From: Macrostomum lignano
Taxonomy: Eukaryota
Direction: 5' to 3'
Assembly: GCA_002269645.1 (NCBI GenBank)
Contig: NIVC01002734.1
Span: 62,001-126,000 of the forward strand
DNA: 64,000 nt
How positions within the stretch are numbered: position 1 is the first letter of the stretch; each line of letters starts with the position of its first letter. Shown here one piece after another: positions 4,397-45,999 of the stretch. The translations under genes were made by a program, and so were the position numbers. The notes under the pieces are model-generated. The model was not told the DNA's origin, ran no database searches, and saw only the letters and a program-made list of their open reading frames with translations.

Positions 4397-4439
<43 letters not shown>

Positions 4440-4496: not shown

Positions 4497-4575
<79 letters not shown>

Positions 4576-15802: not shown

Positions 15803-15945
15803 GTTTAGATCTCATTGCATGATAGTAAGATCTTTTATATATAAGGATATTTAAATCATTAAAATAGCATTTTTAGAATATAAGTTAAGGTTAAAGTTTT
15901 AAAACCTTTTTTTAAGTATTTAATATAAAGCATATAGGTAGGGCC

Positions 15946-18648: not shown

Positions 18649-19301
18649 GGTACTAGTCGTTTCAGTGACAAGACATTTCGGTGACAGACAAATAGTCGTT
18701 TCAGTCACAAGTTGCTATTGTGATAGACACACTTTATTTTAAATGAAAAATCTAAGATTTCATGAGTATTGTCATTTTAGTGATAAGAGACATTTCATAA
18801 TATTCAGTTGTAGTTATTTTGTTAAGATTTATGTTTCATAATATATTTAAATTTTCATTAAAAGAATATATTAAAGAAAAGAAATCAAACCAATTATATT
18901 GTTTTCTTCCTATGCAGATCATTTTGAATTGTTCCAGAGTATTCAGACACATAAACCATAAACCTATAGAGAATCCTCATGAAATGCAGACCACGAGAAA
19001 TGCGGAGATATTCACTCGTCGACGCTTTTGCATGTTTAAATTGGAAAACATAATTCAAAAGACTGGCACAACTCTATAATTGTAAATAAACAAAATTAAA
19101 TATAGAAATAGGCCCTACTTAATTGTTTAAAAAATTATTAAATTTTAGGCTCAATATCCCTTAAGATTTTCGAAGTAATTTTCTGTTTAAAAACAGAATG
19201 GCTATAACTAAAATTGTATTTTTCTTGTCACTGAAATGACTTTTGCTTGTCACCAAAAGGACTGTCACCAAAACGTCTTGTCACCGAAATGACTGTAATC
19301 C
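18649..19301. mobile_element. Non-autonomous Mutator-like (MULE) element, 653 bp
   Basis: GG...CC termini with imperfect TIRs built of GTGACAAGAC/TTTC(A/G)GTGACA repeats; perfect 9-bp TSD ATTTAAATG (18640-18648 and 19302-19310). Confidence 0.85.
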
Positions 19302-20699
19302 ATTTAAATGATGCAACTTTTATGTTTAACATATAATAAAAGCTTTTAATAAAAAGTGCATGCTATAAAGATTTGAATCGGCTACAGGTCAAAAGGGCGA
19401 CAGATCAAAAGGGCGACAGATAAAAGCATCAGTGTCACAAACACGTAGCAGAATAGGACACGTTTTTTTCGGCTTCAGAAGCGGTCAATACATGTTTTGT
19501 GTACGAAAATGTATTAGTAAGATGTATCACCCGTGACACAACGTAAGGCTCAAAAATACCTCTTCACAAGAGCCTTAACCTTTTTTTTAGCCTTTTCCTT
19601 GAGAGCATTTTCCTTAAAGGCAGATAATACCCGTCGATAGGTATTTGTACCCATATTTTTATGCATTTTAAGGCTTCCGTGTACTCGCGTGTAGAAGTTG
19701 TCACGGGTGATGTTGGTAAACTGTATAATTCAAATTCCATTCTAGCTAGCTATTAAAATAATTAGCCTGCGTCAGGATTAGCAAAAATTTAAAGGGCTAG
19801 TGACCAATGTAGCTAGTTCTAGTCTAGGAAGTTGCGCATCTTACCTAGCTATCTTATTCTTGGTCTAATCGGCTAGGCCTATGATATGCTGTTCGACCTA
19901 AATATTAAATTTTACTACTATTGCCATTTTGTTACAGATTTATTTAGGACCTACTGTTCTACCAATGTCAATGGCAATAGATTAAATTTAAAACTACCTA
20001 GGCAGCTAGGCCTAGTAATTTTGCATTTAGTAATACAAAGCCTACTGTTTCACTGATTATTTTCTTCTATTGACTAGTAGCCCTAAATCTAAAATATTTT
20101 CTTTTCTTTTGTGTTATAAGGCCTAGCCTTTACCTTTATGTTATATTATTAAAATGTTCTTTTGACTTAATAATAGTATTAATAAGCATCTTTTTTCTTT
20201 CTTGGATGTAAAGTTAATTTGGTCCTTCTTTGATTTAATTTAATTAGCTTATATTTTATACAATTTACTAAGGCTATAGGAATGGAAGTATTATAATATT
20301 TATATTAATTTTTTCTAACAAATATTATAAATTCTGTTTTATAAGCATCAAAAATGGAAATATAAAACAAGATAATATAGAGCACATTCTATATTGAAAT
20401 ATTATGCACATTTTTAAATATTTTGATAAATAAGATTTCTCCACAAAATTAAAAATATTTTAGAAATTAGATTATAAACTTAAAGCCATAAACCATAGAC
20501 TAGCAACTAGTTATTTACTACCATTATAAAGTAAGTCATGATATCTATCTAGTAGTCATGACCTTTTCTTCCTCTCTAACCTCTATCTATATCCTGTTCT
20601 TCTTTCTAGACCTATTTTCTTTTTGAAAAATTTACCTCCTCTTCCTTCCAATATTACTCCTTTCTTTATTTTAGCCCCATCATGTCTTCCCCTTGAATC

Positions 20700-22330
20700 C
20701 TTATTCTCTCCTCTTCACTACCTACCTTCTCTTTTCTAGTTCTTACTTTCCTCATTTCTAGCCCTTACTCTCTTCTCCTCTCCAGCCTAACCCTCCTAGC
20801 CTCACCTCTTCCTCCAGCCCCACCTAAACCTCTTTGAACCTCTAGCCCCATCTTTTTTTCTTTCCAGCCCTATCCTCCTCCACTCTAGTCTCATCCTACC
20901 TTCCAGTCTTATCCTTCTTTCTAGCCTCACCCTCCTCCCTTTCAAGCCCTACCCTCCTTCCCTGCACCACCACCCTCCTTCTCTCCAGCCCTACCCTCCC
21001 TCCCTGCAACACTACCCTCCTTCCCTCCAGCCCTATCCTCCCTCCCTGCTACCCTGCTTTCCTTCTAGCCCTACCTTTTCCCCTACTACCCCGCATTCCC
21101 CTCCAGCTTCCATCTTCTATCCTCTAGCCCAACCCTTCAGCCCTATCCTTCCCTCTAACCCTACCCCCTTTCCCTCCAGCCCTACCCTCCTTCTCTGCAG
21201 CACCACCCTCCTACCCTCTAGCCCCACCCTCCTTCCCTCTAGCCCACCCTCCTTCCCTCTAGCCCACCCTCCTTCCCTCTAGCCCTACCCTCCTTTCCTC
21301 CAGCCCCACTCTCCTTCCCTCCAGCCCCACTCTCCTTCCCTCCAGCCCCACCCTCCTTCCCTCCAGCCCGACTCTCCTTCCCTCAAGCCCTGCCCTCTTC
21401 CCCTACTGCCCCACGCTCCCCTCCAGCTTCCATCCTCTTCTACCCTCTAGCCCCACCCTCTTACCCTTCAGCCCCATCCTTCCCTCTAACCCTACCCCCT
21501 TTCCCTCCAGCCCTACCCTCCTTCCCTCCAGCCCCACTCTCCTTCCCTCTAGCCCTGCCCTCCTCCTCGACTTTCCACCCTCCCTTCCAGCTTCCACCCT
21601 CTCCTCCCTCCAGGACCCACCCTCCCTCCTTCTAGCCCTACCCTCCTTCCCTCCAGCCCCACTCGCCTTCCCTCTAGCCCACCCTCCTTCCCTCTAGCCC
21701 TACCCTCCTTCCCTCCAGCCCCACTCTCCTTCCCTCCAGCCCCACCCTCCTTCCCTCCAGCCCGACACTCCTTCCCTCCAGCCCCACTCTCCTTCCCTCA
21801 AGCCCCGCCCTCTTCCTCTACTGCCCACGCTCCCCTCCAGCTTCCATCCTCTTCCACCCTCTAGCCCCACCCTCTTACCCTTCCACCCCATCCTTCCCTC
21901 TAACCCTACCCCCTTTCCCTCCAGCCCCACTCGCCTTAGCTCCAGCCCCACCCTCCCTCCCTCTAGCCCTACCCTCCTTCCCTCCAGCCACACCCTCCTT
22001 CCCTCCAGCCCTGCTCTCCTTTCCTCTAGCCCCACTCTCCTTCCCTCCAGCCCCACTCTCCTTCCCTCCAGCCCCACCCTCCTTCCCTCCAGCCCGACTC
22101 TCCTTCCCTCAAGCCCCGCCCTCTTCCCCTACTGCCCCACGCTCCCCTCCAGCTTCCATCCTCTTCTACCCTCTAGCCCCACCCTCTTACCCTTTAGCCC
22201 CATCCTTCCTTCCAGCACCACCGCCTTCTTTCCCCAACCCCAACCTCTCCTCCCCTCGAGTGCTCAGCCTCTCCTCCCCTCAAGTGCTCAGCCTCTCCTC
22301 CCCTCCAGCCTCACCCTCTCCTCCCCCAGC
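20700..22330. repeat. C-rich degenerate minisatellite (CCCTCCAGCCCCACCCTCCTT-like) in FB1 left arm; G-rich mirror at ~29400-30800
   Basis: Visible strand-skewed array and its reverse complement. Confidence 0.93.
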
Positions 22331-22544
22331 ATGAACATCTTCGCCCCTACTGGCCCACCCTTCGCCCCTGCAGTCCCCACCCTATTCTCCTTTTCAGCCT
22401 CACCCTTTTTTCGTAGCTTTGTTAATTAAATTTAATTATCCGTTTTAGAAGTAAAAACGAATATTTCTCCTTCCTCTCTTCTGAATCTCCTCGATGGGGA
22501 GAAAAAGATAAGGCCAAGGCAAAACCTAACAATAGCAAACCAAG

Positions 22545-23070
22545 CAATGGAGACAATGCTACGGAGGGCCCTGCCAACAGGATGAGTACGGCTTTCTACT
22601 TCCTACCGAACAAACAGCCGCCAATCGGAGAAGCGGCTGTCACTCCTGGGTTACGCCGACGACCTGGCGCTGCCCGCCTCTACGGCTGAGGGAGCCCCAG
22701 CGCATGCTAGACAGCCTGGTGGCAGCTGCGGCATCGGTCGGGCATCAACACCGAGAAGACGAGGTGATGACTGTACCCGCGGAGCTGCCTATCAAAATCA
22801 CCTGCTGGGACGCCCGACGGTTGTGCAGCAGCTCTACCTCGTTGCACCCTCGCTGCGACTACCCAGCGAGACCTTCCGCAGGCGAAGACTTCAGCTGGTG
22901 GGCCACACCATCCGCGTGGAGGCCTACTGTTCTCAACCATTGAACCAGTGCAGGACGTCCTGCTGCTCACGATGCAGGGCCCCTGGCGCCGGGATTACGG
23001 CCGGGCGGGTCGCTACGCGGATTGCCTGCTGGATGACGCTGGGTGATCGGCCAGGCGCACGCTGTTGTCG
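22545..23070 (+). pseudogene. Decayed RTE-like LINE reverse-transcriptase fragment in FB1 arm; mirror copy at ~28730-29235 (-)
   Basis: Translates to ...EKRLSLLGYADDLAL...MLDSLVAAAASVG..., similar to the RT at 49996-51303 (KKLSVLGYADDLALL...LLDSLTAAAARVG); frameshifted. Confidence 0.85.
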
Positions 23071-24040
23071 CTTTCAGAGAGTTAGCACTGAAAGAACTGA
23101 TCTGACACTGCCTCCCATTGTGAACTGTTACTCTTAACTCAACCTTGCCTTGTTGTTTTCTCTTCAGAATAATTTGCCCAGCTGCAAACTGTGATGGTGC
23201 ATATCTCGTACTCGCGATTAAAAAATCTTATACTTCTTACTGTTTCACTGATTTAATTCCGAACCAACCAGGAAAACAAATTTATTTTTAATTCCGTGCA
23301 TTTTTCTTGTGCTTTACTTTTACTGATCGGTGTTAGTGCTATTTATTGTGTGTAATATTATCGAAAAATTCAATTTCCGATGTCATTATTTAGGAACTTC
23401 CGCTGTGCTGTATTAAAACTATATAGTACTTCCGCATGCACTGACGTAGCATTGCGCCAATAATTTTACATTGCGTGACGCAGGCGCCTAAACCAATCTT
23501 TTGTTGAATGCTACTAGCATAATAATCCTTTGAAATACATTGTATTGCTATACTGCATTGCTTTTGATGATCTAAACGAGACTAGCTAGACTCCTCACTG
23601 ATCCATACGAGTATGCTCCTCAGTCCTCAAGCGAACTACGAGTATATGGAAACGAGAGCAGATTGAGCTAGCAGCAAACTTAGTATTTGATCTTCGGATC
23701 ACGGATAGAATCAAGGAAATGTAGATCTGGCACTTACACAAAAGTCCTTGATTTAATGGAATACAGCAATTTTCAATCTGTCACTTTTTCAACTTCAACT
23801 TTTTAAAATTTGGATTGGCGCAAGTCTCCTTTACATCGTCAAAAGCAATACTGGTTCCAATCCAAGAGAATGATTTGTTGATAACTGTATTTCACTCTTT
23901 GAGCTGAACGCTGTGTTTGACCATTATTTTGTTGGTGTACAGCGTGCAACAGATCGCATGAATTGGTAAATTTCCTTTCATGCGTTCCTTTCATCCTATA
24001 ATTCTGGTAGGGGGCGCTGCTGTTGCAAAGAGCGGCGGTG

Positions 24041-24437
24041 GATAGCGGAGCTGTTGCAGGAGCTGCGGCAGATAGCGGAGCTGTTGCAGGAGCTGCGGCA
24101 GATAGCGGAGCTGTTGCAGGAGCTGCGGCAGATAGCGGAGCTGTTGCAGGAGCTGCGGCAGATAGCGGAGCTGTTGCAGGAGCTGCGGCAGATAGCGGAG
24201 CTGTTTCAGGAGCTGCGGCAGATAGCGGAGCTGTTGCAGGAGCTGCGGCAGATAGCGGAGCTGTTGCAGGAGCTGCGGCAGATAGCGGAGCTGTTGCAGG
24301 AGCTGCGGCAGATAGCGGAGCTGTTGCAGGAGCTGCGGCAGATAGCGGAGCTGTTACAGGAGCTGCGGCAGATAGCGGAGCTGTTGCAGGAGCTGCGGCA
24401 GATAGCGGAGCTGTTACAGGAGCGGCGGCAGATAGCA
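24041..24437. repeat. 30-bp GC-rich tandem array (GATAGCGGAGCTGTTGCAGGAGCTGCGGCA), ~13 units
   Basis: Near-perfect units; the mirror array is at 26612-27780. Confidence 0.97.
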
Positions 24438-25569
24438 GATTTACTCGTATCCCAAAAATATTCGCCTTTAAAATTGCATACAGTGTTTGAAAAAATCAAT
24501 TGTGGAGTTTTAGATGCTTGAATCAATTTTGCTTAAGCCAGTGGCGTTTGCCGTACATGCCGTTCAATCTTTTTGTACATAAGGCCAAGCATAATTCTCA
24601 AATGGTAGATTTATCGCTTGGTTTCAAGTGCGTTAAGTCCTGTCACGAGTGCGCATAGCCTCCTCGCCTGTGTGGAGTTTTATTAGCCATTGATGAGGCT
24701 CCATGACCAGTAGCGCACTTGATGCAGTAATCTTTACGCACGAATTAAGGAATCTTAAAAACGAATAACCAATTAAGGAATTTATTTGCGAAGCTGTTTT
24801 CTGATTTAGACAAGCGTATAGACATTTAGAGGAATTGGAACTTACCATACTGCTAAGGAAAGGGAAAACAGCTTGTCTGCATGGAGTTCTCACAGGAAGC
24901 TGGAGTTTTACCATAAGACTATAAGAGATATACATGTAAAGAGACGAAGAGTGGGGACTAAAATTTTGAGTTGGTCCCGGAAGAAGAGGTGACGAGAAGG
25001 ACGACAAGAGCTGAAAATGTCTCGAACCACTACAGATCGACTAAGGCTTTAGACTGGCATGGAGTGACGGCGCTGGTTGATGAGCACTGGCTGTCTCCGG
25101 CGATTTTTTGACGAAGATCACAGGCAAACAATTCAAATAGACTTTTGGATTACCGGAGATTGATGGAGCTGGCTGAGAAGAAGCTGTACTGGTGGAGTTG
25201 ACAAGAATATTTGCGCTCAGTAACTCGAGAAGACCAGCTGAATTGAAGGGACAAAGCGAGAAGATCGTTCTTTATTTGGGCCTCTTTTGGAAGCTTGCTT
25301 CTGCGCACATACAGCCATGACCTGACCTGAAGGACCTGACAAGATGTAAGAAAGGTCTACTAGCTACATTTAGATGCCGGCGTCAAATTTCTCTACATAA
25401 CAGCACCAACGGAACCTTGTTCCAGATAATGACCTGTGCCCCAACATTCTCAATGAGTGCCAGTCCAATCGCGTCTCCACCGAAGGAATTGCCAATCTGA
25501 GATAACGCTACACTCCCGTAGCTATCGTATCACGCGATATATCCTCAATGACCACTGCTGGAACCCTGG

Positions 25570-25895
25570 GTGAGCTCCACTGCTACCACTGACGGTTCAA
25601 AGCAGTCAATCAACACCGGCTTTGATGTTGGGATCTTTCTGAACGGGAGGGTTTCGCAACCAACGCTCAGTACACTGAGGTCAACTCCAGTGTTTTCCAA
25701 AATGAATTAGTTCTCGCCATCAGCTCCTGCACTGCAGAGCTTCTCGCCACTGGCGTAACCGGTAAGAGCATAACCGAAACCGGCCTTGTAGACTTGGCAT
25801 GGCATCTGTGGCTGCAGCGTCAATTCTAAAACATTCCTTGACATGTTGGGTTCCACCAACGAATTTACTCTTCACTGGGTTCCGGGGCATGTGCA
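25570..25895 (+). pseudogene. Decayed RNase H domain of a non-LTR retrotransposon in the FB1 spacer
   Basis: Manual translation gives TDGSK..., NSSVFQNELVLAISSC, and LDMLGSTNEFTLHWVPGH across frameshifts. Confidence 0.75.
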
Positions 25896-26169
25896 GGAGC
25901 GGTGGAAGATAGCAAAGCTGTTGCAAGGAGCCAGCGGTGGTAGATAGTGGAGCATGGCCGGCAGGGCGGGAGCGAAGAGTAGAAGTGGCAGGCTGCAGAA
26001 GCTTTTTGTTGTTTTGCATGGCTGCTAAACATGTAAATGCTGAAGTTAATTATGATAAATTGAGTACATGTGCGTGTGAGATGTGCTTTTTATTAGCCAT
26101 AAACGGTATACAGTATGTACAGTACAGCTACATTAGCATACATATATATTGTAGTTCAATAACATTTTG

Positions 26170-26450
26170 ACTCAAACGAGTCCGGCGTTCGAGTCACGAC
26201 GATGTGCCATTTTTTTAATTTATTTAGTCTCCAGACCACAAGTCCTCAAGGATACGGTACAGCTGATCAAGGGAAGCTGGCTGCTGCCTCTGGATGTCCC
26301 ACTCGACCCAGTTCCATATATTCTATATCGGATTGAGGTCTGGTGACTGTGCTGGCCAGTCCATGGTGCGAATGTTGTTCTCAGCTATGCTCGGCTATGC
26401 GCACTCGTGACAGGACTTAACGCACTTGAAACCAAGCGATAAATCTACCA
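26170..26450 (-). pseudogene. Tc1/mariner transposase C-terminal remnant
   Basis: Manual translation gives IAENNIRTMDWPAQSPDLNPI*NIWNWVEWDIQRQQPASLDQLYRILEDLW, matching the WPxxSPDLNPIE motif with the E mutated to a stop. Confidence 0.85.
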
Positions 26451-26611
26451 TTTGAGAATTATGCTTGGCCTTATGTACAAAAAGATTGAACGGCATGTAC
26501 GGCAAACGCCACTGGCTTAAGCAAAATTGATTCAAGCATCTAAAACTCCACAATTGATTTTTTCAAACACTGTATGCAATTTTAAAGGCGAATATTTTTG
26601 GGATACGAGTA

Positions 26612-27780
26612 AATCTGCTATCTGCCGCCGCTCCTGCAACAGCTCCGCTATCTGCCGCAGCTCCTGCAACAGCTCCGCTATCTGCCGCAGCTCCTGCAAC
26701 AGCTCCGCTATCTGCCGCAGCTCCTGCAACAGCTCCGCTATCTGCCGCAGCTCCTGCAACAGCTCCGCTATCTGCCGCAGCTCCTGCAACAGCTCCGCTA
26801 TCTGCCGCAGCTCCTGTAACAGCTCCGCTATCTGCCGCAGCTCCTGCAACAGCTCCGCTATCTGCCGCAGCTCCTGCAACAGCTCCGCTATCTGCCGCAG
26901 CTCCTGCAACAGCTCCGCTATCTGCCGCAGCTCCTGCAACAGCTCCGCTATCTGCCGCAGCTCCTGCAACAGCTCCGCTATCTGCCGCAGCTCCTGCAAC
27001 AGCTCCGCTATCTGCCGCAGCTCCTGCAACAGCTCCGCTATCTGCCGCAGCTCCTGCAACAGCTCCGCTATCTGCCGCAGCTCCTGCAACAGCTCCGCTA
27101 TCTGCCGCAGCTCCTGCAACAGCTCCGCTATCTGCCGCAGCTCCTGCAACAGCTCCGCTATCTGCCGCAGCTCCTGCAACAGCTCCGCTATCTGCCGCAG
27201 CTCCTGCAACAGCTCCGCTATCTGCCGCAGCTCCTGCAACAGCTCCGCTATCTGCCGCAGCTCCTGTAACAGCTCCGCTATCTGCCGCAGCTCCTGCAAC
27301 AGCTCCGCTATCTGCCGCAGCTCCTGCAACAGCTCCGCTATCTGCCGCAGCTCCTGCAACAGCTCCGCTATCTGCCGCAGCTCCTGCAACAGCTCCGCTA
27401 TCTGCCGCAGCTCCTGTAACAGCTCCGCTATCTGCCGCAGCTCCTGCAACAGCTCCGCTATCTGCCGCAGCTCCTGTAACAGCTCCGCTATCTGCCGCAG
27501 CTCCTGCAACAGCTCCGCTATCTGCCGCAGCTCCTGCAACAGCTCCGCTATCTGCCGCAGCTCCTGCAACAGCTCCGCTATCTGCCGCAGCTCCTGCAAC
27601 AGCTCCGCTATCTGCCGCAGCTCCTGCAACAGCTCCGCTATCTGCCGCAGCTCCTGCAACAGCTCCGCTATCTGCCGCAGCTCCTGCAACAGCTCCGCTA
27701 TCTGCCGCAGCTCCTGCAACAGCTCCGCTATCTGCCGCAGCTCCTGCAACAGCTCCGCTATCCACCGCCGCTCTTTGCAA
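26612..27780. repeat. 30-bp tandem array, ~38 units (mirror of 24041-24437)
   Basis: Visible array; source of the 405-426-aa repeat ORFs. Confidence 0.97.
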
Positions 27781-30700
27781 CAGCAGCGCCCCCTACCAGA
27801 ATTATAGGATGAAAGGAACGCATGAAAGGAAATTTACCAATTCATGCGATCTGTTGCACGCTGTACACCAACAAAATAATGGTCAAACACAGCGTTCAGC
27901 TCAAAGAGTGAAATACAGTTATCAACAAATCATTCTCTTGGATTGGAACCAGTATTGCTTTTGACGATGTAAAGGAGACTTGCGCCAATCCAAATTTTAA
28001 AAAGTTGAAGTTGAAAAAGTGACAGATTGAAAATTGCTGTATTCCATTAAATCAAGGACTTTTGTGTAAGTGCCAGATCTACATTTCCTTGATTCTATCC
28101 GTGATCCGAAGATCAAATACTAAGTTTGCTGCTAGCTCAATCTGCTCTCGTTTCCATATACTCGTAGTTCGCTTGAGGACTGAGGAGCATACTCGTATGG
28201 ATCAGTGAGGAGTCTAGCTAGTCTCGTTTAGATCATCAAAAGCAATGCAGTATAGCAATACAATGTATTTCAAAGGATTATTATGCTAGTAGCATTCAAC
28301 AAAAGATTGGTTTAGGCGCCTGCGTCACGCAATGTAAAATTATTGGCGCAATGCTACGTCAGTGCATGCGGAAGTACTATATAGTTTTAATACAGCACAG
28401 CGGAAGTTCCTAAATAATGACATCGGAAATTGAATTTTTCGATAATATTACACACAATAAATAGCACTAACACCGATCAGTAAAAGTAAAGCACAAGAAA
28501 AATGCACGGAATTAAAAATAAATTTGTTTTCCTGGTTGGTTCGGAATTAAATCAGTGAAACAGTAAGAAGTATAAGATTTTTTAATCGCGAGTACGAGAT
28601 ATGCACCATCACAGTTTGCAGCTGGGCAAATTATTCTGAAGAGAAAACAACAAGGCAAGGTTGAGTTAAGAGTAACAGTTCACAATGGGAGGCAGTGTCA
28701 GATCAGTTCTTTCAGTGCTAACTCTCTGAAAGCGACAACAGCGTGCGCCTGGCCGATCACCCAGCGTCATCCAGCAGGCAATCCGCGTAGCGACCCGCCC
28801 GGCCGTAATCCCGGCGCCAGGGGCCCTGCATCGTGAGCAGCAGGACGTCCTGCACTGGTTCAATGGTTGAGAACAGTAGGCCTCCACGCGGATGGTGTGG
28901 CCCACCAGCTGAAGTCTTCGCCTGCGGAAGGTCTCGCTGGGTAGTCGCAGCGAGGGTGCAACGAGGTAGAGCTGCTGCACAACCGTCGGGCGTCCCAGCA
29001 GGTGATTTTGATAGGCAGCTCCGCGGGTACAGTCATCACCTCGTCTTCTCGGTGTTGATGCCCGACCGATGCCGCAGCTGCCACCAGGCTGTCTAGCATG
29101 CGCTGGGGCTCCCTCAGCCGTAGAGGCGGGCAGCGCCAGGTCGTCGGCGTAACCCAGGAGTGACAGCCGCTTCTCCGATTTGCGGCTGTTTGTTCGGTAG
29201 GAAGTAGAAAGCCGTACTCATCCTGTTGGCAGGGCCCTCCGTAGCATTGTCTCCATTGCTTGGTTTGCTATTGTTAGGTTTTGCCTTGGCCTTATCTTTT
29301 TCTCCCCATCGAGGAGATTCTGAAGAGAGGAAGGAGAAATATTCGTTTTTACTTCTAAAACGGATAATTAAATTTAATTAACAAAGCTACGAAAAAAGGG
29401 TGAGGCTGAAAAGGAGAATAGGGTGGGGACTGCAGGGGCGAAGGGTGGGCCAGTAGGGGCGAAGATGTTCATGCTGGGGGAGGAGAGGGTGAGGCTGGAG
29501 GGGAGGAGAGGCTGAGCACTTGAGGGGAGGAGAGGCTGAGCACTCGAGGGGAGGAGAGGTTGGGGTTGGGGAAAGAAGGCGGTGGTGCTGGAAGGAAGGA
29601 TGGGGCTAAAGGGTAAGAGGGTGGGGCTAGAGGGTAGAAGAGGATGGAAGCTGGAGGGGAGCGTGGGCAGTAGGGGAAGAGGGCGGGGCTTGAGGGAAGG
29701 AGAGTCGGGCTGGAGGGAAGGAGGGTGGGGCTGGAGGGAAGGAGAGTGGGGCTGGAGGGAAGGAGAGTGGGGCTAGAGGAAAGGAGAGCAGGGCTGGAGG
29801 GAAGGAGGGTGTGGCTGGAGGGAAGGAGGGTAGGGCTAGAGGGAGGGAGGGTGGGGCTGGAGCTAAGGCGAGTGGGGCTGGAGGGAAAGGGGGTAGGGTT
29901 AGAGGGAAGGATGGGGTGGAAGGGTAAGAGGGTGGGGCTAGAGGGTGGAAGAGGATGGAAGCTGGAGGGGAGCGTGGGGCAGTAGAGGAAGAGGGCGGGG
30001 CTTGAGGGAAGGAGAGTGGGGCTGGAGGGAAGGAGTGTCGGGCTGGAGGGAAGGAGGGTGGGGCTGGAGGGAAGGAGAGTGGGGCTGGAGGGAAGGAGGG
30101 TAGGGCTAGAGGGAAGGAGGGTGGGCTAGAGGGAAGGCGAGTGGGGCTGGAGGGAAGGAGGGTAGGGCTAGAAGGAGGGAGGGTGGGTCCTGGAGGGAGG
30201 AGAGGGTGGAAGCTGGAAGGGAGGGTGGAAAGTCGAGGAGGAGGGCAGGGCTAGAGGGAAGGAGGGTGGGGATGGAGGGAAGGAGAGTGGGGCTGGAGGG
30301 AAGGAGGGTAGGGCTGGAGGGAAAGGGGGTAGGGTTAGAGGGAAGGATAGGGCTGAAGGGTTGGGCTAGAGGATAGAAGATGGAAGCTGGAGGGGAATGC
30401 GGGGTAGTAGGGGGAAAAGGTAGGGCTAGAAGGAAAGCAGGGTAGCAGGGAGGGAGGATAGGGCTGGAGGGAAGGAGGGTAGTGTTGCAGGGAGGGAGGG
30501 TAGGGCTGGAGAGAAGGAGGGTGGTGGTGCAGGGAAGGAGGGTAGGGCTTGAAAGGGAGGAGGGTGAGGCTAGAAAGAAGGATAAGACTGGAAGGTAGGA
30601 TGAGACTAGAGTGGAGGAGGATAGGGCTGGAAAGAAAAAAAGATGGGGCTAGAGGTTCAAAGAGGTTTAGGTGGGGCTGGAGGAAGAGGTGAGGCTAGGA

Positions 30701-35350: not shown

Positions 35351-35493
35351 ACCCTGCCACTCTACCTCTCACAGGCTACCCCTCCCAGACAGCCCTCCCA
35401 GACAGCCCTCCCAGACAGCCCCTCCAGGCTAACCCAACTCTACCCCTCCCAGGCAGCCCTTCCGGGCTTCATCTCCCACTCAACCTCTTCCAG

Positions 35494-35830
35494 AAGCGGA
35501 GGACGATCGCAGGACTGTCTGCTGCCTGCCGCTTCGGCTGCAGTGACCGCCGGCTCAAGCGGAGGACGATCGCAGGACTGTCTGCTGCCTGCCGCTTCGG
35601 CTGCAGTGACCGCCGGCTCAAGCGGAGGACGATCGCAGGACTGTCTGCTGCCTGCCGCTTCGGCTGCAGTGACCGCCGGCTCAAGCGGAGGACGATCGCA
35701 GGACTGTCTGCTGCCTGCCGCTTCGGCTGCAGTGACCGCCGGCTCAAGCGGAGGACGATCGCAGGACTGTCTGCTGCCTGCCGCTTCGGCTGCAGTGACC
35801 GCCGGCTCAAGCGGAGGACGATCGCTGCTC
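35494..35830. repeat. 63-bp GC-rich tandem repeat, ~5 units (mirror with ~3 units at 41760-41940)
   Basis: Unit AGCGGAGGACGATCGCAGGACTGTCTGCTGCCTGCCGCTTCGGCTGCAGTGACCGCCGGCTCA. Confidence 0.95.
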
Positions 35831-38800
35831 CGCGTGCTATCATCTACTAGTGTTGTGAGTGCTAAGGGCGATCGAAGGACTAATGAAGAAGCATATTATC
35901 CGATTTCTTTTAGAGGAGATCTATGCCAGTTATTTATCTTCTCGTTTAATTAGCAGTGAGTAAAAAAATACGACAATTATATGCTGCCGCTTATAGACTC
36001 TACAATATCATCAGCAGAATACGTAAATTGAAGTCGTTTGAAACAAGAGTACGTAGATGGTAAGATGGCATGTATTTAGCTTCTTCCTAGTGAAATCAGT
36101 GAATTGTGTTGGTCGCTTACAGAACCTATTCAGCTTCTCCGCTCATAGTCACTCCAGCATCAAGTGCTAACAATGCAGATTAGCTATGAACTGTATTGGA
36201 ATGCTTTGCATCATGCATTTGCATTTTAAATACAAGGACTTTTTCTCTCGTTCATTGGCAGGTATCGAGATGAGACAAAGCAATGTGCATTATGCTGCTG
36301 CCGATGCACAGGACGCAAGAGTGCACGCAGGATCCTCGTGAGGTGAAAGAAGACGACGGTGACGACTACGACATGTATGACTATTCAGCCACATTGGACA
36401 GAAATTAGCTGTTAGCCGACGTAGCCGTATAAATGTTTGGTCACACTTCTCTGTGCCCGTGGCGTATGCAACATTTAATCCATGACCTCTTTGCAATATT
36501 GCACTACCATCAAACGCTGACGCTCTTTTTCTCGCTCTGTAATGCTGTAACCAGTTTTTTGTCCCCCCCCTTGTCGAGTTTGAGAGAACTATGCAGCGCA
36601 TTTTTTCGACAAGAGTTTTTCATTGTCTTTTGTCAATGTGCAGTTTTACGGGTACATGTATATACTTAACTGAGTATTGTAAACATGTGCCTCTAAAATA
36701 AAACAGACTTCACTGCTTTTAACTATGCTTTTTACGATAATTCGCTCTGTCATGTCCTGAAACATTCCTGTTTTATCGAATTCTCTTTTGATGATGACAC
36801 AAATATGGTCACAAAGAATAGTGGGAGGTAGAGCCATATGGCGCGAGGTATAAAGTGATTTTACATGATTTTACATGATTTTACGAGAGGTATGATTTTA
36901 CATTACAGTAGTCTCAATAGTTTATCTCCCCCTATTGGCCTCCCTTTCTCCTTCTCGCCCTCTGTCTCTGCAGCACCTGTTGGTTAAAAATGAGAGGAAA
37001 GCTCGGCAAGAAAAGCCTCTGTGGAAAAGTCTCGTGCTCTCATAGCCTGACATCCTGCCACTTTTTAAATAGCCATGACTTTCCTGGTACATGGACATTT
37101 ACATACGTAAGTTGTTTCCATCGGATTGAGACATGATTTATAACTAGTATAAGTATATTAGTAATAGTAAATTCAGTCAGTCTTATCATATACGAGCAGT
37201 GGCGGATCTAGAATTTCATTTTGGGAGGGGGCGGTCCAAGTTTGGGAGGCCAACATGAGTAATGAGGGGCACCAATTATGAGGGGGTGCAAAAATGCTGT
37301 ACTGCTGAAAATAACGAACGGGAAACACGGATTGCATGTTATTAATTTAAATACGTACGAGTATTTGATTTGAGAAGCACAATATCGGGGAAAAGTTTTG
37401 CCTTCTCTGTGACGTGCTTGGCAAGTGCACATGCACTAGCTACATGGGGGGGTTCATAAGACCGAAATTTCACAACGCCGAAACCATACTTCACAAGACC
37501 GATACTTCATAAGACCGAAATTTCACAACGGCGGAGTTTTAACAAAAGCTCTCAGCCAATCGGAAAATTCAGCGTGCGTTAAAACAAATCGGCCGCGTGA
37601 GAGCTATAAAAGGCGGCAACTCTAACTGCGCTCGAAATATCTCCCGGTTTTTGTCCTTGCCAATGCCTGGGGCGCTCAACTTGGCCTGATACGGCCTTCT
37701 GGCTCTTCCCCCTACGGTCCTGCCGATCTGATCCTCCTTCCCCCGGCAGTTTCGTCTTCAAAAGCTAAGTTCCCCCTGAGAAGCATCATCAATATCTCCC
37801 GGCAGTGATCTAAGAGCATGAGCAGCAACGACAACCGGCAAGTGAGGAGCAACAGCGTCGCGCGTCAGTTAAGATCAGCAGCAGCATACCATCTGAGTGT
37901 TTCGGTCTCTGTGGATTCCTTGGCTACCGGCAGATAGGTCCTCTGATTGGTTGGGTGAGAGGCTCTTTTGACCTGCTTAACTGGGTGCACCCTTTGTCTG
38001 ACCCCTTCCTAGGTAGTCTGATAGGATTTGCACTTTTGCTTACTTGCTTTTGTGTGCCAATCTCGAGGCAGAAGTGTCAGTTAATATTAAAATTAGCCAT
38101 TTGCTCGAACTCAATCTAAAGTGTTTAGGATTGCGGATTAAGTGAGAAAGCTAAATCTGGAAGTTAAAGACTTGGCGTTTTCATTCTTTTTCGCAATACC
38201 AGCTGAGATGAGCGGCTTAATCTAGAGGCAGAGGTCACGGTGGACCGGAAGCGGCACAGTTCCCAGTCAATCAGTCGATCTAAGAAATCATTATGTTAAG
38301 CATGCAAATTAAGTGCCAGACTGGCGCTTTCGCGCTGTCTCAGGCAGCTAAGCGGCTAAAACGAGATAAATATTAGTCTGAAGGTCTCCAAAAGTGACAA
38401 TACATCTACACCATCGTTATCTGTCGACGTGTTTACACATTTAGTGCCAAAAGCGTGCAGTTACGTGTACTTATGCATGTACTTCTGGGAATTCGGTAAT
38501 GAAATAGTACATTTAGTAGTGTATGAAGGCTCGCCAGCGCAAGAACCCCCTGCAAAAGTCCTCTCTGTCCCTGCATGGCCAATGCGATCTTAGTCCCAGC
38601 AGCGTCCCTTCTATTCGGCTATGACTTCGAGATAGACAGCTAAAAGACACTAGATGGCAGGTAAGTGCAGTGCCCCTCTAGTCGGAAGTCCGATTTCGAT
38701 AGCTCCGGTTTGGTGAGCCGGGGCGCACGGACTGGTGGTAGCGGGTTAGTTAATCTGCGGATTAGCTAATCTCTACCTTTCAAATTCTCCCTGCTTGTCT

Positions 38801-39145
38801 CTCGCTGTCTTCTCCTAGCTATAGGACCTTGCTGCTCGCCCACAATCTAGCTACCATGGGGCTGACCATCTGACAGGAGTGAGAGGCCAGAGTTCTAAGT
38901 GATTCATTTCCGAATTCTGAGGCCCGAAGCTATAGGCTTAGAAAGGCCGAACCCATCAAATTGAAGAGAATGTCAGTTTTGATGAGCTACAGGTAAGTTT
39001 ATCCCTTGCTCAAATTTCTGCCGAGGAAAAAGCCTGATCTATTTACTACATAAGTGGCTACGTTTACACAAAAATGCACAAAAACTTGACTAAAAATGCA
39101 TTCTGCTCGCTGAGCCGTGGAGTGGATTTCAGCTGGACTACAGTA

Positions 39146-39758
39146 CAGTATGGCTAGGAAAGAAGTGCATTTGGGATAACTCCAGTAGTGGAATATAAAG
39201 GAAACTCCAGCATTGGAGCGAGTACTGGATCGCTGATATAAATCCAGCATTGGAGCATCGGTGCTGGCTCCAATGCCGGAATTTCCTTATGCTCTAATGC
39301 TGGAGTCATACATGTATCAGCTCCAATACTGGAGCTTCGGTTTTGGCACCGGAAAAGTGCAAATAACTCTACCGGACGACCTTCTGGCGCTCTGGGACCG
39401 GCGCCAATCGACTCAGGGGGCCGAAATCTATCAGAAAATGTTGGTCGCATAGGCGCGAAAGGCACTCTGCAAATGCCAAAAAAATGTATCCCCGGCCTAG
39501 GTGTACTTGTCAAATTCACACCTTATCAACCTGCTGCCGGTAAAGATTCTGCAAGTAAACCGGCTGTCCTGCAACTTGCAACTAATCAAAACTACGCAAG
39601 CCGCTGAGCAGTGTCGCACTAAACTGCACGCTAAAATCTACCATCAATCTATAGTATTGGAGTCTACAAGGCTTCAATGCTGGAGTTTCCTTTATATTCC
39701 ACTTTTGTACCTTTGTACTGGAGTTATGCCAAAATGCACTTCTTTCCGAGCCATACTG
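39146..39758. mobile_element. Small foldback/MITE (Tc1-like CAGT start) in the FB2 spacer
   Basis: Inverted termini CAGTATGGCT(A/C)GGAAAGAAGTGCATTT...ATAACTCCAGT plus internal CTCCAGCATTGGAG repeats. TA precedes the left end, but the right flank is TT, so the TSD is not confirmed. Confidence 0.6.
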
Positions 39759-40059
39759 TTCCCCAAAACGATAGATTTGGCGCATGAAATTATACTCGAT
39801 AATAGGTAAAGAAATTCTGCACCAGCAGTACTTTACCGCTTGTCAAAATATTGAATAGTTGCTGAGATATCGATGCTACAATTTCGGTGAATTTCCAGTG
39901 CTCTTCAAATCAGCGCAAAATACGTTTTTTAGTCCAGCTCAATCCACTTCACGGCTTCGTGTGGATTCACTTGCAATCAGTAAAAGTGGCAAAAGTAGAG
40001 ATCTGTTTTGGTTGTTAAATATTAAGCTTGCATGCAAAGGTATTATTAACTACCAAATA

Positions 40060-40730
40060 GCAGCACACAGGGACTCAATTCCAGTGTTTTTTAGAGCGAG
40101 GTGCTTGCCATCAGCTCCTGTGTGGTGCCAGAGCTGTTCGAAGGCAGCTTAGCTTGCAGTCAGAAATTTATTTTTCACTCCGACAGCCAAGCAGCCCTTC
40201 TGCCCGTCTGCTGCAGCACCACCAACTCCAGATCTGTCCTGGACTGCAACGCCCGGCTCCATGCAGGGCTTGCGCTGGGCAACCAGCAGGTGGAGCTCAA
40301 ATTGACCCCGGCCTACGATGTCATGGTTTCCATCCCGGCAAGGCTGGCTCCGCCGGCACGCTTCTGGACCGGGCCCAGGGGCCCCCACCCCTGCGCCTCG
40401 GTGATTAACTCCCGCGTCAAGCACTGGGCTGACTCTTAGCATCTCCGCAGGTGGCAGGATCAACACTCGAAATTGCAGGAAATCCCGTGCTGCTGTCCCC
40501 CTGCGTAGAGCCTTCCTTAGGCTCAACCTCAGGGATCTTAAGAGCATTTACATGTACATGGGCCCTCTCCGGGCATGCATGGCTGCTTCTCTCGCCACCG
40601 CTTCCTTCAGGGCCAGGTACTTGAGGAGCCGTGCGCGGTGCCCCAAGCTCTTCTGCCGCTCAACAGGCAGTAAAAACGCAGAACAATTTATCTGCCACTA
40701 CCTGGTCTTCACCACTCACTCACCCCGGCC
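40060..40730 (+). pseudogene. Decayed RNase H plus C-terminal zinc-knuckle region of a non-LTR retrotransposon in the FB2 spacer
   Basis: Motifs SVF..EVLAISSC, FHSDSQAAL and FWTGPRGP; downstream GCFSRHRFLQGQ and NAEQFICH. Confidence 0.8.
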
Positions 40731-43700
40731 CAACTCTCCGATGCTTGCAGGCCCGAGAGCATATCGATGCTCACCCGGTACCTCAGCTGAGTTTTCCCCA
40801 CCGCCGGTGAGGAGGACCGTGCTGCAAGCGAGACCGACGCCCCCGGAAGGGACATCACTTCGATGGAAGTCATTCATGGTCGCCAGAGGCTAGCGGAATT
40901 GGGCGGTCTTCTTCGCCTCCTGATCGCTGCATCCGCCGGATGATCTCCTCTGCAGCTAGGTCAAACATACTCGTGTGCATACTGGCACTAATCCATGATT
41001 GAACATACATGTAGGTGAAATACTTGCGTGAGTTGCGTCAGTGTCAATACGCTCTTGCTCCAAAATACTTGAGCTCTTGTGCTAATCTCCATTCTAGCCG
41101 TGCTTGCTTTTGCTAGTGCGAGCTTGTTCATGCAACCCAATTTTGGTGCTATTTTTAAGCCTAGCTTACTTGAGGTAGCAAATTAGCCAGACTATGTGGA
41201 TAGTTTGCCATTAGCTAAGGATAGTTTAACATTCTGAGCAGGATGAGAGAATTTTCAGGCCGCCGCGATCCGAAATTCAAACCGCGACTTGCAGTCTGGT
41301 CAATTCTTTTGCACGAACGAAATTTCTCAAATAAGTGTAACACAAAGTGAAAAAATTAGAAAACTACTTGGACGATTTGACCTTTCAAAACTGCACTAAA
41401 ATGCGTGGCGCAACAGCCAAATTACCGGGTGACATCGATCGAGCAAAAGTGCTTTTTTATTTAAGTGCAAAAATTACAGCTCTCAATAAACGCAAAGGTA
41501 ATGTGCCGCTTGGATAGAAAAACTTTATGCAGCTACGCAAAAACAACTGAAGTAATACGCGCAACATAGAGCTGCCCGCAAAAACTTCAGCTACACAGCA
41601 ACTACAAACCGCTGGTACAGGACTGCGCATCGCCAGGGTGAGTCCCACGAACACGCATCACTTCAGACAATCGTTCAGATAATAAACATAGTTATTAAAT
41701 AACCCTCACTTTGCCACTGTTCGTTAAGGTCGAAACGGAACCGGACTGGATGATAGCACGCGGAGCAGCGATCGTCCTCCGCTTGAGCCGGCGGTCACTG
41801 CAGCCGAAGCGGCAGGCAGCAAACAGTCCTGCGATCGTCCTCCGCTTGAGCCGGCGGTCACTGCAGCCGAAGCGGCAGGCAGCAGACAGTCCTGCGATCG
41901 TCCTCCGCTTGAGCCAGTGGTCACTGCAGCCGAAGCCGCAGCATTCATCGGATCCTTGCAAAATAAAATATCTTTTCTGGCATTCCAAATCCCAAATGGC
42001 TTTCATAAACGCACAGTTCCCCGTTGGAAAGCCGAATACAAAGTGCGGCGTCAGCGTTAGCTGACTCGCATGTACGCACCAGAAATGGTGAGAGTGAAGC
42101 GTCTGAAGTAAATAATGATGCATAGTCTTCTTCTCAGTTTTGAACATAAATGGAGACAGTACTCAAGGGCACAGTGGGAGATAGCCTGGAAGTGGTTGCC
42201 ATGGAAGGGGTAGCCTGGGAGAGTAGCCTGGAAGAGCTGCCTGGGAGGGTTAGACTGGAAGGGCTGCCTGCGAGGGGTAGTCTCGGAGCGCTGCCTTGGA
42301 GGGGTAGAGTGGAAGAGGAGCCTGAGAGGGGTTGAGTAAGAGGGGTAGCCTGGCAAGAGTAGCCAGGAAGGGTAGCCTAGGAGCGCTGTCTGGAAGAGGT
42401 TGATGAGAGATGAAGCCCGGAAGGCCGGCAGGATGTGGAGAAGCCGGCAGGATGTGGAGAAGCCGGCAGGGTGTGGGGAAGGGTAGCAGGGAGTAGGGAA
42501 GTCCAGCAGGAAGTGGGGAAGCCGGCAGGGTGTAGGGAATGCCAGAAGGGAGTGGGAAAGGCCTGCATTGATGGGGAAGGAAAGCAAGGTGTAGGGAAAG
42601 CCTGCATTGGTAGTGAAGATTACCAGGGTGTGGGGAAAGACAGCAGGGTGTGGGGAAGGACAGCAGGGTGTGGGGAAGGGTAGCAGGGAGTAGGGAAGGC
42701 CAGCAGGATGAGGGGAAGCAGGCAGGGTGTGGGGAAGGCCGGCAGGGTGTGGGGAAGGGTAGCAAGGAGTAGGGAAGGCCAGCAGGATGTAGGGAAGGCC
42801 GGCAGGGTGTGGGGAATGCCAGCAGGGAGTGAGGAAGGCCTGCATTGATGGGGAAGGACAGCAGGGTGTGGGGAAGGGTAGCAGGGAGTAGGGAAGGCCA
42901 GCAGGATGTGGGGAAGGACAGCAGGGTGTGGGGAAGGGTAGCAGGGAGTAGGGAAGGCGAGCAGGATGTGGGGAAGCTAGCAGGGTGTGGGGAAGGCCAG
43001 CAAGGAGTAAGGAAGGCTGGCAAGGGTGTGGGGAAGGCCAGCAGGGTGTGGGGAATGCCAACAGGGAGTGAGGAAGGCCTGCATTGATGGGGAAGGACAG
43101 TAGGGTAGGGGAAAGACAGCAGGGAATTGGGGAAGGACAGCAGGGTGTAGGGAAAGCCTGCATTGGTAGTGAAGACAAGCAGGGTGTGGGGAAGGACAGC
43201 AGGATGTGGGGAAGGGTAGCAGGGAGTAGGGAAGGCCAGCAGGATGTGGGGAAGCAGGCAGGGTGTGGGGAAGGCCGGCAGGGTGTGGGGAAGGACAACA
43301 GGGTGTGGGGAAGGGTAGCAGGGAGTAGAGAAGGTCAGCAGGATGTGGGGAAGCCGGCAGGGTGTGGGGAAGGCCGGCAGGGTGTGGGGAAGGGTAGCAA
43401 GGAGTAGGGAAGGCCAGCAGGATGTGGGGAAGGCCGGCAGGGTGTGGGGAATGCCAGCAGGGAGTGAGGAAGGCCTGCATTGATGGGGAAGGACAGCAGG
43501 GTGTGGGGAAGGGTAGCAGGGAGTAGGGAAGGCCAGCAGGATGTGGGGAAGGCCGGCAGGGTGTGGGGAATGCCAGCAGGGAGTGAGGAAGGCCTGCATT
43601 GATGGGGAAGGACAGCAGGGTGTAGGGAAAGCCTGCATTGGTAGTGTAAGGCAAGCAGGGTGTGGGGAAGGACAGCAGGGTGTGGGGAAGGGTAGCAGGG

Positions 43701-45999
43701 AGTAGGGAAGGCAAGGCCAGCAGGATGTGGGGAAGCCGGCAGGGTGTGGGGAAGGCCGGCAGGGTGTGGGGAAGGGTAGCAAGGAGTAGGGAAGGCCAGC
43801 AGGATGTGGGGAAGGACAGCAGGGTGTGGGGAAGGGTAGCAGGGAGTAGGGAAGGCGAGCAGGATGTGGGGAAGCTAGCAGGGTGTGGGGAAGGCCAGCA
43901 AGGAGTAAGGAAGGCTGGCAAGGGTGTGGGGAAGGCCGGCAGGGTGTGGGGAATGCCAGCAGGGAGTGAGGAAGGCCTGCATTGATGGGGAAGGACAGCA
44001 GGGTAGGGGAAAGACAGCAGGGTATGGGGAAGGACAGCAGGGTGTAGGGAAAGCCTGCATTGGTAGTGAAGACAAGCAGGGTGTGGGGAAGGACAGCAGG
44101 ATGTGGGGAAGGGTAGCAGGGAGTAGGGAAGGCCAGCAGGATGTGGGGAAGGCCGGCAGGGTGTGGGGAAGGGTAGCAAGGAGTAGGGAAGGCCAGCAGG
44201 ATGTGGGGAAGGCCGGCAGGGTGTGGGGAATGCCAACAGGGAGTGAGGAAGGCCTGCATTGATGGGGAAGGACAGCAGGGTGTGGGGAAGGGTAGCAGGG
44301 AGTAGGGAAGGCCAGCAGGATGTGGGGAAGCTGGCAGGGTGTGGGGAAGGCCAGCAAGGAGTAAGGAAGGCTGGCAAGGGTGTGGGGAAGGACAGCAGGG
44401 TAGGGGAAAGACAGCAGGGTATGGGAAAGACAGTAGGGTGTGGGGAAGGCTAGCAGGATATGGGAAAAGCCAGCAAGGTGTGGCCATGTGGGAAGGCCAA
44501 CAAGATACAATGAAGGCCAAGCAGGATACATTGAAGAGCAGCAAGGTTTGTGAAAGACAGCAGGGTATGGAAAAGGCCTATAAAAGACAATGAAGGGCAG
44601 CAAGGTATGGGAAAGGCTTGTATTGATAAGAAAAGGTAGCAAGTGTTGTAGGAAGGCCATTGGGGTAAGGTATGGTAAAGGGCAGTAGGGTGTAACCATG
44701 TAGGGAAGGCTAGCAGGTTATGGGGAAAGGGAAGGTTAAAAAAACAAAAAATATAGAACCTCTAAATACTAAATACTAATTTCAGGCTTAACCTATAACA
44801 TAAAATAGTAGAATAGAACCCAATTTATCAATAAAATAAAAAATAAAAAATACATCCATTTATGGAATTTTATGCTAGCTCAGCTAGTTGTACTACATAT
44901 ATATAATAGGCTATTAGTATAGTATATTAGAACCCTAAATTATGGTTGTTCAATATATCTATCAATATAGCTAGCTTTACTAAATAGTTTCTCTCCTAAA
45001 CTCAGGATTCAGGGTTCAGAAAAAAGAATATTGAATATATAGCCCTAGGCCTAGCTTAGTCACACAGTTATTGCATTCAGTTACAAAATTGTGCATAGGC
45101 CTAGCTACAAACTGAAACTGAGCGCCATCCAAGTTCACTAATTGAACTTTAAGTCGAGTTGTATTGTTCTCCTGTTCTAATATTAATTCGCTGGGCCTAT
45201 TAATATTGTGGAAATAATAAACAGCTAGTAGGCCTACATAAAATAATGTTAAATGTTAACACTTACACTTGTAACTAAGTCATCCTGACCTAATTTTTAT
45301 CTAGCATTCTAGTGACACTAAAATACTGTACTAGAGAATAGTAGCGTAGTAGGTTAGTAAAATCGCTAGGCCTACTTTGCATTAGTGAACTAAAAAATAA
45401 GCAGAAACGTCTGTTCAAATTTGTGCCATATTTGGCCCTTGTGCGCATAAAAAAGGCGGTCTATAGCATGCTACTGTATCATATAGCATGATACGGACTG
45501 CCTTATAGGCGGTTTTTGCCGTGTTCTATACCGCCTAACGTGTATATACGGCTGCTATCGACGGGTATTATCTGCCTTTAAGGAAAATGCTCTCAAGGAA
45601 AAGGCTAAAAAAAGGTTAAGGCTCTTGTGAAGAGGTATTTTTGAGCCTTACGTTGTGTCACGGGTGATACATCTTACTAATACATTTTCGTACACAAAAC
45701 ATGTATTGACCGCTTCTGAAGCCGAAAAAAACGTGTCCTATTCTGCTACGTGTTTGTGACACGGCTGGCAGATAAAAGGGCGACAGTCAAAAGGGCGACA
45801 GTCAAAAGGGCGACAGTTACAGTGTATTTATATTGAAAATACGAGTTCCACGTACATTAAAAGTATTTGTTAAAAGCAGTAAACATGTATCATACTTGTA
45901 TTTGTTAAAATGCGTTGTTAAAATTGTACGAGCAGTTAAAATGGGGTTGTATAAAAGCTGGACACGTATTGGACTCACTATTAAATGTTAAAATGTGGT

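Follow-up and report, generated by a model that had tools for sequence, protein, structure and literature searches.

What is the 26.3-kb block of nested palindromes in the middle of contig NIVC01002734.1 of the flatworm Macrostomum lignano, and how did it come to lie there? The contig (145 kb) belongs to assembly Mlig_3_7 (GCA_002269645.1), and we analyzed a stretch of 64,000 nucleotides of it, hereafter called the window, in which positions equal record positions minus 62,000. A first-pass annotation of the bare sequence had divided the block, or nest, into two large foldback elements, designated as FB1 and FB2, and had placed FB2 inside the right arm of FB1. Our analysis indicates that the nest very probably consists of two nested non-autonomous foldback-like cut-and-paste DNA transposons of M. 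lignano. The host, the family, and the size are new, while the kind of element is a known one and not a new type of system.

An inverted-repeat search and a self-BLAST of the window, the self-comparison proposed at first pass, reproduced the layout X-Y-[spacer 1]-Y'-Z-[spacer 2]-Z'-X', in which a prime marks the inverted counterpart of a segment. The eight junctions given by the first-pass annotation all proved correct by these two methods and by direct reading. The paired segments are as follows:

19427-19632 and 45562-45768: X arms
19633-24660 and 26393-31861: Y arms
31862-35844 and 41749-45554: Z arms

In this layout FB1, the host element, has the following parts:

19427-45768: FB1, 12,642 bp without its guest FB2, with arms of 5.2 kb
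19417-19426: left target-site duplication of FB1, CAGATAAAAG, read directly and identical to 45769-45778
19427-24660, plus strand: FB1 left arm (X and Y), with the outermost nucleotides CATCA outside the inverted repeat
20912-22330: C-rich 21-bp tandem array of the left arm, found with Tandem Repeats Finder
22607-23120, plus strand: degenerate reverse transcriptase fragment of a non-long terminal repeat (non-LTR) retrotransposon in the FB1 arm (tblastx E = 6e-18)
24019-24436: 30-bp tandem array of the left arm, 14 copies versus 39 at 26617-27784 in the right arm
24661-26392: FB1 spacer (spacer 1), 1,732 bp, unique and non-coding, with no internal repeats and no Pfam or protein-database match
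26393-31861, minus strand: inner part of the right arm (Y'), ending in the FB2 target CTATCGA (31855-31861)
45562-45768, minus strand: outer part of the right arm (X'), whose terminus reads CCAGCCGTGTCACAAACACG on the complementary strand
45769-45778: right target-site duplication of FB1, CAGATAAAAG, a perfect 10 bp

The guest element FB2 has the following parts:

31862-45554, plus strand: FB2, 13,693 bp, in the FB1 right arm, 207 bp from the FB1 right end
FB2 termini: 5'-CACCCGTATATACACGTTAGG and, as the complement of the right end, 5'-CAGCCGTATATACACGTTAGG; the exact terminal strings occur in the window and in the two further copies described below
31855-31861 (left) and 45555-45561 (right): target-site duplication of FB2, CTATCGA, 7 bp
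31862-35844, plus strand: FB2 left arm, comprising 1.07 kb of unique sequence, a 20-bp C-rich array (32932-35357), a degenerate inner part, and a 63-bp array (35494-35825)
35845-41748: FB2 spacer (spacer 2), 5,904 bp, non-coding
41749-45554, minus strand: FB2 right arm

The inverted repeats thus make up most of each element, with arms of 5.2 kb in the 12.6 kb of FB1 and of 3.8-4.0 kb in the 13.7 kb of FB2. Outside the tandem arrays, arm alignment and the inverted-repeat pairs showed the arms to be near-identical: those of FB1 have 0 mismatches across 19633-21190 and contain an exact pair of 2,304 nt, and those of FB2 differ at 5 positions in 2,642 bp, with the inner few hundred bp being degenerate. 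Chance is no issue for exact inverted repeats of kilobase scale. The chief difference between arms is the copy number of the tandem arrays, as determined by Tandem Repeats Finder. The arms are modular, with arrays of 21-, 30-, 20-, and 63-bp units whose copy number is unequal between arms and between FB2 copies; the 21-bp and 20-bp arrays carry indels between arms, and the 63-bp unit occurs 5.3 times in one arm versus 2.8 times in the other. The mirror of the 21-bp array, at about 29473-30386, is shorter, and a gap of 310 bp separates the FB1 arms in the alignment there. The reverse transcriptase fragment, which is too short for a Pfam match, is mirrored in the FB1 right arm with 100% identity, both copies lying within the 2,304-nt exact pair, and it is colinear with a reverse transcriptase (RVT_1) open reading frame (ORF) at 49996-51303. 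Because this piece is exactly mirrored, much of each FB1 arm appears to be passenger DNA older than the last event that made the arms identical.

Two empty sites support the proposed parse, in which each element has its own target-site duplication. We fetched two paralogous loci, L003 and L004, via two same-assembly paralogues of a 673-aa protein encoded in the window. L003 (NIVC01000010.1) is 98-99.9% identical to the window flanks: window 17084-19426 corresponds to L003 6871-4539 (98.9% identity), and window 45769-47070 corresponds to L003 4548-3247 (99.9%). The two flank alignments overlap in L003 by exactly 10 bp, which are the 10-mer that borders FB1. L003 reads ...GGGCGA CAGTTAAAAG GGCGAC..., with the 10-mer present once, one single-nucleotide polymorphism (SNP), and an equal number of surrounding 16-bp units. 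Since L003 lacks the nest and has a single 10-mer, the 26.3-kb nest is an insertion that duplicated 10 bp, and L003 is the precise empty site that the first-pass annotation had suggested looking for. When the G beside the right terminus of FB1 is included, the duplication lengthens to 11 bp and contains one mismatch. The target of FB1 was an array of five 15-16-bp units, GTCAAAAGGGCGACA, now at 19379-19426 and 45769-45818. L004 is an older paralogue (85-93% identity) without the whole stretch 19379-52255; its homology stops at 19378, exactly where the 16-bp array begins, and resumes at 52256.

The FB1 left arm is the intact empty site for FB2. When FB2 and one copy of its flanking repeat were deleted in silico, the FB1 right arm became the exact complement of the left arm, apart from the 6 nt at the outer end and a homopolymer indel of 1 nt. 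As removal of FB2 restores the symmetry of the FB1 arms, the insertion of FB2 into the FB1 right arm is the correct parse. The FB2 flanks match exactly as an 8-mer, CTATCGAC, at 31855-31862 and 45555-45562, and the first-pass annotation had accordingly given FB2 a duplication of 8 bp. The duplication exists, but it is 7 bp long: all three FB2 copies that we know begin with C-ACCCGT and end with ACGGCTG, and the C is therefore part of the element.

The two further copies were found by an exhaustive search with a 932-aa ORF running through the FB2 arm, which led to two annotated M. lignano peptides from the 63-bp array:

NIVC01000778.1 (near 257-277 kb), 6159-19259 of locus L125: FB2 copy, 13,101 bp
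NIVC01000385.1 (near 584-604 kb), 5626-19274 of locus L126: FB2 copy, 13,649 bp

Each is a complete FB2, with left arm, colinear spacer, and right arm, and has no FB1 sequence around it; the flanks are unrelated. The spacer of the window copy is colinear with theirs at 96-99% identity apart from indels. The inverted repeat of FB2 can be written as CA(C/G)CCGTATATACACG, in which the third nucleotide distinguishes the ends of all three copies (C on the left, G on the right), a position that escapes the concert of the arms. Only 27 substitutions in 13.1 kb distinguish L125 from L126 (99.8% identity). Their spacers both carry, at a TTAA, a 2,056-bp internally deleted piggyBac element (Pfam DDE_Tnp_1_7 with a C-terminal zf-Tnp_2), located at L125 13932-15987 and in the matching stretch of L126, and the corresponding TTAA of the window copy (41155-41158) is unoccupied. 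The remnant common to two copies with unrelated flanks shows that a 13-kb FB2 was transposed as a unit after gaining it. FB2 is thus a young multi-copy family with at least three insertion sites and was recently mobile. The claim made at first pass that such elements "move as units" is upheld for FB2 by three sites with identical termini, while FB1 is known from a single copy; the claim that they "can target each other" stands on one event, the insertion of FB2 into FB1.

Three peptides of the ML2 annotation have no match above 95% in any FB2 copy, which suggests that further, more diverged FB2 copies exist. These peptides and the NCBI gene models BOX15_Mlig018474g1 and g2 are translations of the 63-bp array that run on into the spacer (L125 10001-10159, L126 10001-10171, and window 35494-35850), and the inner part of FB2 is probably transcribed. 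The UniRef label of the ML2 peptides, "Clade I nitrous oxide reductase", is surely wrong. A low-complexity peptide match from an ENA hifiasm contig (P0045/L127) was unrelated to the nest. The FB2 spacer in the window also contains a small inverted-repeat element (39145-39759, ~615 bp, arms of 31-33 nt), which falls within a 1.4-kb stretch (39071-40508) missing from the L125 and L126 copies.

The arms of each FB2 copy resemble each other more than they resemble the arms of other copies. An alignment of the six arms over their terminal 1,050 bp has 94 variable columns, counting SNPs and indels, and 72 of these set the two window arms apart from the four arms of L125 and L126. As the variants are symmetric within each copy, the arms evolve in concert, and we infer arm-to-arm gene conversion as the cause. 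Re-synthesis of the second arm from the first at each transposition was considered and rejected: all copies retain the C/G asymmetry at position 3, and the arms of L125 and L126 differ in length by 1.3-1.9 kb even though these copies are very young.

The flanks of these two copies are crossed. CTCGATG borders L125 on the left and ACGTTTG on the right, whereas L126 has ACGTTTG on the left and CTCGATG on the right, a double 7/7 match that would arise by chance with a probability of ~4e-9. When the flanks are re-paired, two ordinary insertions result, each with a perfect 7-bp duplication (CTCGATG and ACGTTTG). The exchange reflects either ectopic recombination (an inversion, a translocation, or insertion of a hybrid element) or a copy switch by Canu within the 99.8%-identical 13-kb repeat, and we lean slightly toward the assembly mis-join. 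A comparison of arms within and between copies, following the approach used for Galileo, yielded only a few private changes, as L125 and L126 are too alike. Exchanged duplications proved the role of Galileo in Drosophila inversions (PMC2775673). It is conceivable, though on balance doubtful, that the exchange is real, that FB2 has already mediated an inversion or translocation, and that foldback elements drive rearrangements in M. lignano, possibly with a transposase that makes a stagger of 7-10 bp.

Neither element encodes an intact transposase, in agreement with the first-pass annotation. Pfam searches of open stretches of at least 45 aa in the unique region of the Y arm (22300-24050) and in both spacers gave no match, and neither did a word-indexed search of concatenated ORF pieces from arms and spacers against 5.8 billion proteins, the latter query alone covering the unique arm parts outside 22300-24050. 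The ends of the two elements share a motif: the termini of FB1 and FB2 align from nucleotide 1 as CAGCCGT - ACACG - TAG - ATAGRACACG, with a local score that was equalled in 24 of 5,000 shuffles. Beyond the termini, a comparison of the FB1 and FB2 interiors revealed no similarity. A search of metagenome contigs with a degenerate terminal pattern returned 120 matching stretches, none truly similar to the nest, the pattern being too loose.

Next to the nest, 222 bp from the right duplication of FB1, lies an apparently intact gene for a Phantom-type transposase with FLYWCH and MULE domains (46000-47661, minus strand, 508 aa), which has introns of 99 nt (46678-46776) and 36 nt (46261-46296). Its nearest matches in the protein database come from molluscs and crustaceans and reach only ~42% identity; these relatives include no M. 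lignano paralogue, and no autonomous FB copy was reached by this route. An exact-protein look-up of the ORF of the first exon returned no record. In L003, the paralogous gene copy lacks 212 bp that are present at window 47071-47282. Neither L003 nor the window, after removal of the nest, showed convincing inverted repeats or FB-like termini around the gene. The 16-bp array hit by FB1 may be the end of the MULE element itself. The 16-bp unit also recurs once, inverted, within the MULE coding region (47313-47326). Compared with L004, a single indel comprises this array together with the MULE gene, the reverse transcriptase ORF, and a lectin-like ORF.

Several observations weigh against reading the nest as two nested transposons. 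All evidence comes from one assembly of PacBio continuous long reads (CLR) made with Canu; a single copy of FB1 is known, compared with three full FB2 copies with common termini; the support for the common terminal motif is modest (p about 0.005); the duplications of 10 bp for FB1 and 7 bp for FB2 are spread more widely than is usual for one transposase; and the window and the fetched loci yielded neither an autonomous copy nor a cognate transposase. The difference in duplication length argues against a single transposase for FB1 and FB2 and sits uneasily with their common terminal motif. The dependence on one assembly raises the question of an artefact, namely fold-back chimeras from missed SMRTbell adapters or mis-joins. 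Mlig_3_7 was assembled by Canu from PacBio RS data, and the genome is repeat-rich and partly and recently duplicated (PMC5730564); arms of 100% identity are what a fold-back chimera would give, and the exchanged flanks of L125 and L126 make mis-joins within the repeat conceivable. Missed-adapter chimeras, however, have no unique spacer, whereas spacers of 1.7 and 5.9 kb are present here; the arms are distinguished by array copy number and a few substitutions; both FB1 and FB2 have exact duplications and precise empty sites; the arm-spacer-arm structure of FB2 was assembled three times on different contigs; and the nest lies midway along its contig. An artefact is accordingly highly improbable. 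The single copy of FB1 could instead mean that FB1 is not a transposon but a one-off inverted duplication, or DNA captured at a double-strand break, with FB2 alone being mobile, and its arms do hold genomic debris (the long interspersed nuclear element (LINE) fragment and minisatellites). We consider this very unlikely: a perfect 10-bp duplication that is single in the paralogue points to staggered-cut integration and not to break repair, and the termini of FB1 resemble those of FB2 from the first nucleotide.

Taking both elements as transposons leaves the question of which superfamily mobilizes them. Judged by length, the FB2 duplication fits P/Galileo best and the FB1 duplication fits Mutator/Foldback (Phantom) best; superfamily membership, which would require a transposase, is claimable for neither. 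hAT was rejected, as the duplications are 7 and 10 bp and not 8, and the CACCC, CAGCC, and CATCA termini have no G at position 5 (YARNG). It is possible, if far from established, that the elements are of the P/Galileo type. FB2 has exact 7-bp duplications at three sites, as Galileo does (PMC2775673), within the 7-8-bp range of the P superfamily; the termini start with CA, the long arms contain internal tandem repeats, the similarity of FB1 and FB2 is limited to the outermost ~40 bp as between Galileo subfamilies and species, arm identity is higher within than between copies, and duplications are exchanged between two copies as at Galileo inversion breakpoints. This likeness is drawn from published descriptions and not from direct comparison with the termini of Galileo, 1360, or P. 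The 10-bp duplication of FB1 lies outside the P-type range, and no THAP/P-type transposase sequence was present in the 64-kb window or in ~80 kb of fetched M. lignano loci. That both elements are of the Mutator/Foldback kind (Phantom-type MULEs), mobilized by a FLYWCH and MULE transposase such as the neighboring gene product, is rather unlikely. The 10-bp duplication of FB1 is within the range of 8-11 bp for MULEs, and Phantom elements are present in Platyhelminthes (PMC6446971); Tm1 and Tetris are foldback elements with 8-10-bp duplications, Tm1 also having asymmetric outermost nucleotides; the neighboring gene carries both domains; and the FB1 target array, which may be the MULE's own end, starts where L004 homology ends. 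However, the 7-bp duplications of FB2 at three sites are outside the MULE range, the gene is not flanked by FB-like inverted repeats and no autonomous copy with FB termini occurs in the window or fetched loci, its distant relatives and the lack of an M. lignano paralogue among them leave a link to a young family unsupported, and its L003 copy bears the 212-bp deletion.

The nest can be compared with known foldback systems. Galileo, of the P superfamily, has arms of 0.5-1.2 kb (PMC3688188) that are >99% identical within a copy and ~7% divergent between copies, 7-bp duplications, and only ~40 terminal bp conserved (PMC3688188, PMC2775673). Homogenization between arms has been reported for it (PMC2775673). 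FB1 and FB2 resemble Galileo in their long inverted arms with internal tandem repeats, in the duplication length (FB2), in having only ~40 terminal bp in common as Galileo subfamilies do, in the higher identity of arms within a copy (FB2), in being mostly non-autonomous, and in the exchanged duplications, found for Galileo at rearrangement breakpoints and here in L125 and L126. They are unlike it in their arms of 4-5 kb and total size of 12.6-13.7 kb, in the absence of a linked THAP/P transposase, in the 10-bp duplication of FB1, and in their host, a flatworm and not a fly. Whole Galileo elements measure at most about 5-6 kb.

Tm1 of root-knot nematodes combines FB-like composite arms with duplications of 8-10 bp and with terminal nucleotides that are asymmetric; its transposase is of the FLYWCH and MULE type, and nested insertions have been reported for it (PMC3169594). 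With Tm1, Drosophila FB, and the Phantom-type MULEs, our elements share composite tandem-repeat arms with unequal repeat number, short asymmetric nucleotides outside the inverted repeat, a duplication of 8-10 bp (FB1, 10 bp), non-coding derivatives, and nested insertion; the transposase of that group is of the FLYWCH and MULE family, and such a gene adjoins FB1. The 7-bp duplications of FB2 differ from this group, and no FB-terminated MULE gene was found here. Tm1 has been described as old and inactive, whereas FB2 copies are 99.8% identical. Tm1 elements are also far shorter, of kilobase scale or below. Tetris, a foldback element of Drosophila virilis with 8-10-bp duplications (PMC4079207), has modular arms (terminal domain, tandem repeats, and inner domain) and a non-coding middle domain as our elements do, and it likewise has few structurally complete copies, no known autonomous partner, and a superfamily assigned from duplication length alone (PMC4079207). 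It differs from FB2 with its 7-bp duplications, and its internal repeats seeded a satellite. With FB, Galileo, Tetris, and Tm1 forming a known class with long, repetitive, non-coding arms, the first-pass view of the nest as the best candidate for an undescribed system was too strong. We found no description of a foldback-type transposon of M. lignano in the searchable literature. The published repeat annotation of M. lignano threw out unclassified repeat models, and elements such as FB1 and FB2 would therefore have escaped it.

Under the reading of two nested transposons, FB1 entered the short 16-bp repeat array with duplication of 10 bp, and FB2 entered the FB1 right arm with duplication of 7 bp. 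Since no cognate transposase was found, the mode of mobilization is deduced from structure: both elements may be mobilized in trans by a transposase encoded elsewhere, which would read only the outer few tens of nucleotides, where the common motif is CA-C-GT ... ACACG ... ATAGRACACG. The kilobases of arm, comprising tandem arrays and a captured LINE fragment, would be passenger sequence that grew by slippage and capture, and intramolecular conversion would homogenize the arms. FB1 and FB2 are two to three times the size of well-studied foldback-like families, yet FB2 moved very recently, which raises the questions of how a transposon with ends 13 kb apart that form a 4-kb hairpin achieves synapsis and movement and how the host tolerates such palindromes. 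Near-identical palindromic repeats of 13 kb are also likely to break contigs and create mis-joins in a genome that is difficult to assemble. The karyotype of M. lignano, a neopolyploid, is notoriously unstable, and FB elements are candidate substrates for the chromosomal rearrangements seen in this flatworm. The known categories of mobile elements are unchanged by FB1 and FB2, which are of note chiefly for their size and recent mobility.

Other features of the window were recorded alongside the nest. Minisatellites are abundant across the window according to Tandem Repeats Finder, as is expected in M. lignano, and Rfam and tRNA scans of the window for structured RNAs gave no match. The RVT_1 ORF (49996-51303, minus strand) belongs to a non-LTR retrotransposon and is related to the FB1-arm fragment; beside it lies a 234-aa ORF (48874-49578, minus strand), by eye a candidate C-type lectin, for which an exact-protein look-up returned no record. 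On the left side of the nest, a non-autonomous hAT-like element of 1,138 bp (15946-17083) is bounded by perfect inverted repeats of 13 bp, TAGTGTTCCGCCG, and has a duplication of 8 bp, GTAGGGCC, a TAGTG terminus, and subterminal CCGTAA/CCGTAG repeats. It is missing from L003 and is thus a second insertion polymorphism between the window and that locus. An element of about 680 bp resembling a miniature inverted-repeat transposable element (18633-19316), with ~57-nt imperfect inverted ends rich in TGTCACC, is present in L003 and not in the older paralogue L004. Finally, a gene trio encoding a PAP2 phosphatase, a YjeF_N protein, and a DUF4209/EMARD_N protein (589-12811) is syntenic also in L003 and L004; two of its copies share 98-99.9% identity and the third is more distant (85-95%), in keeping with the layered duplication reported for the genome.

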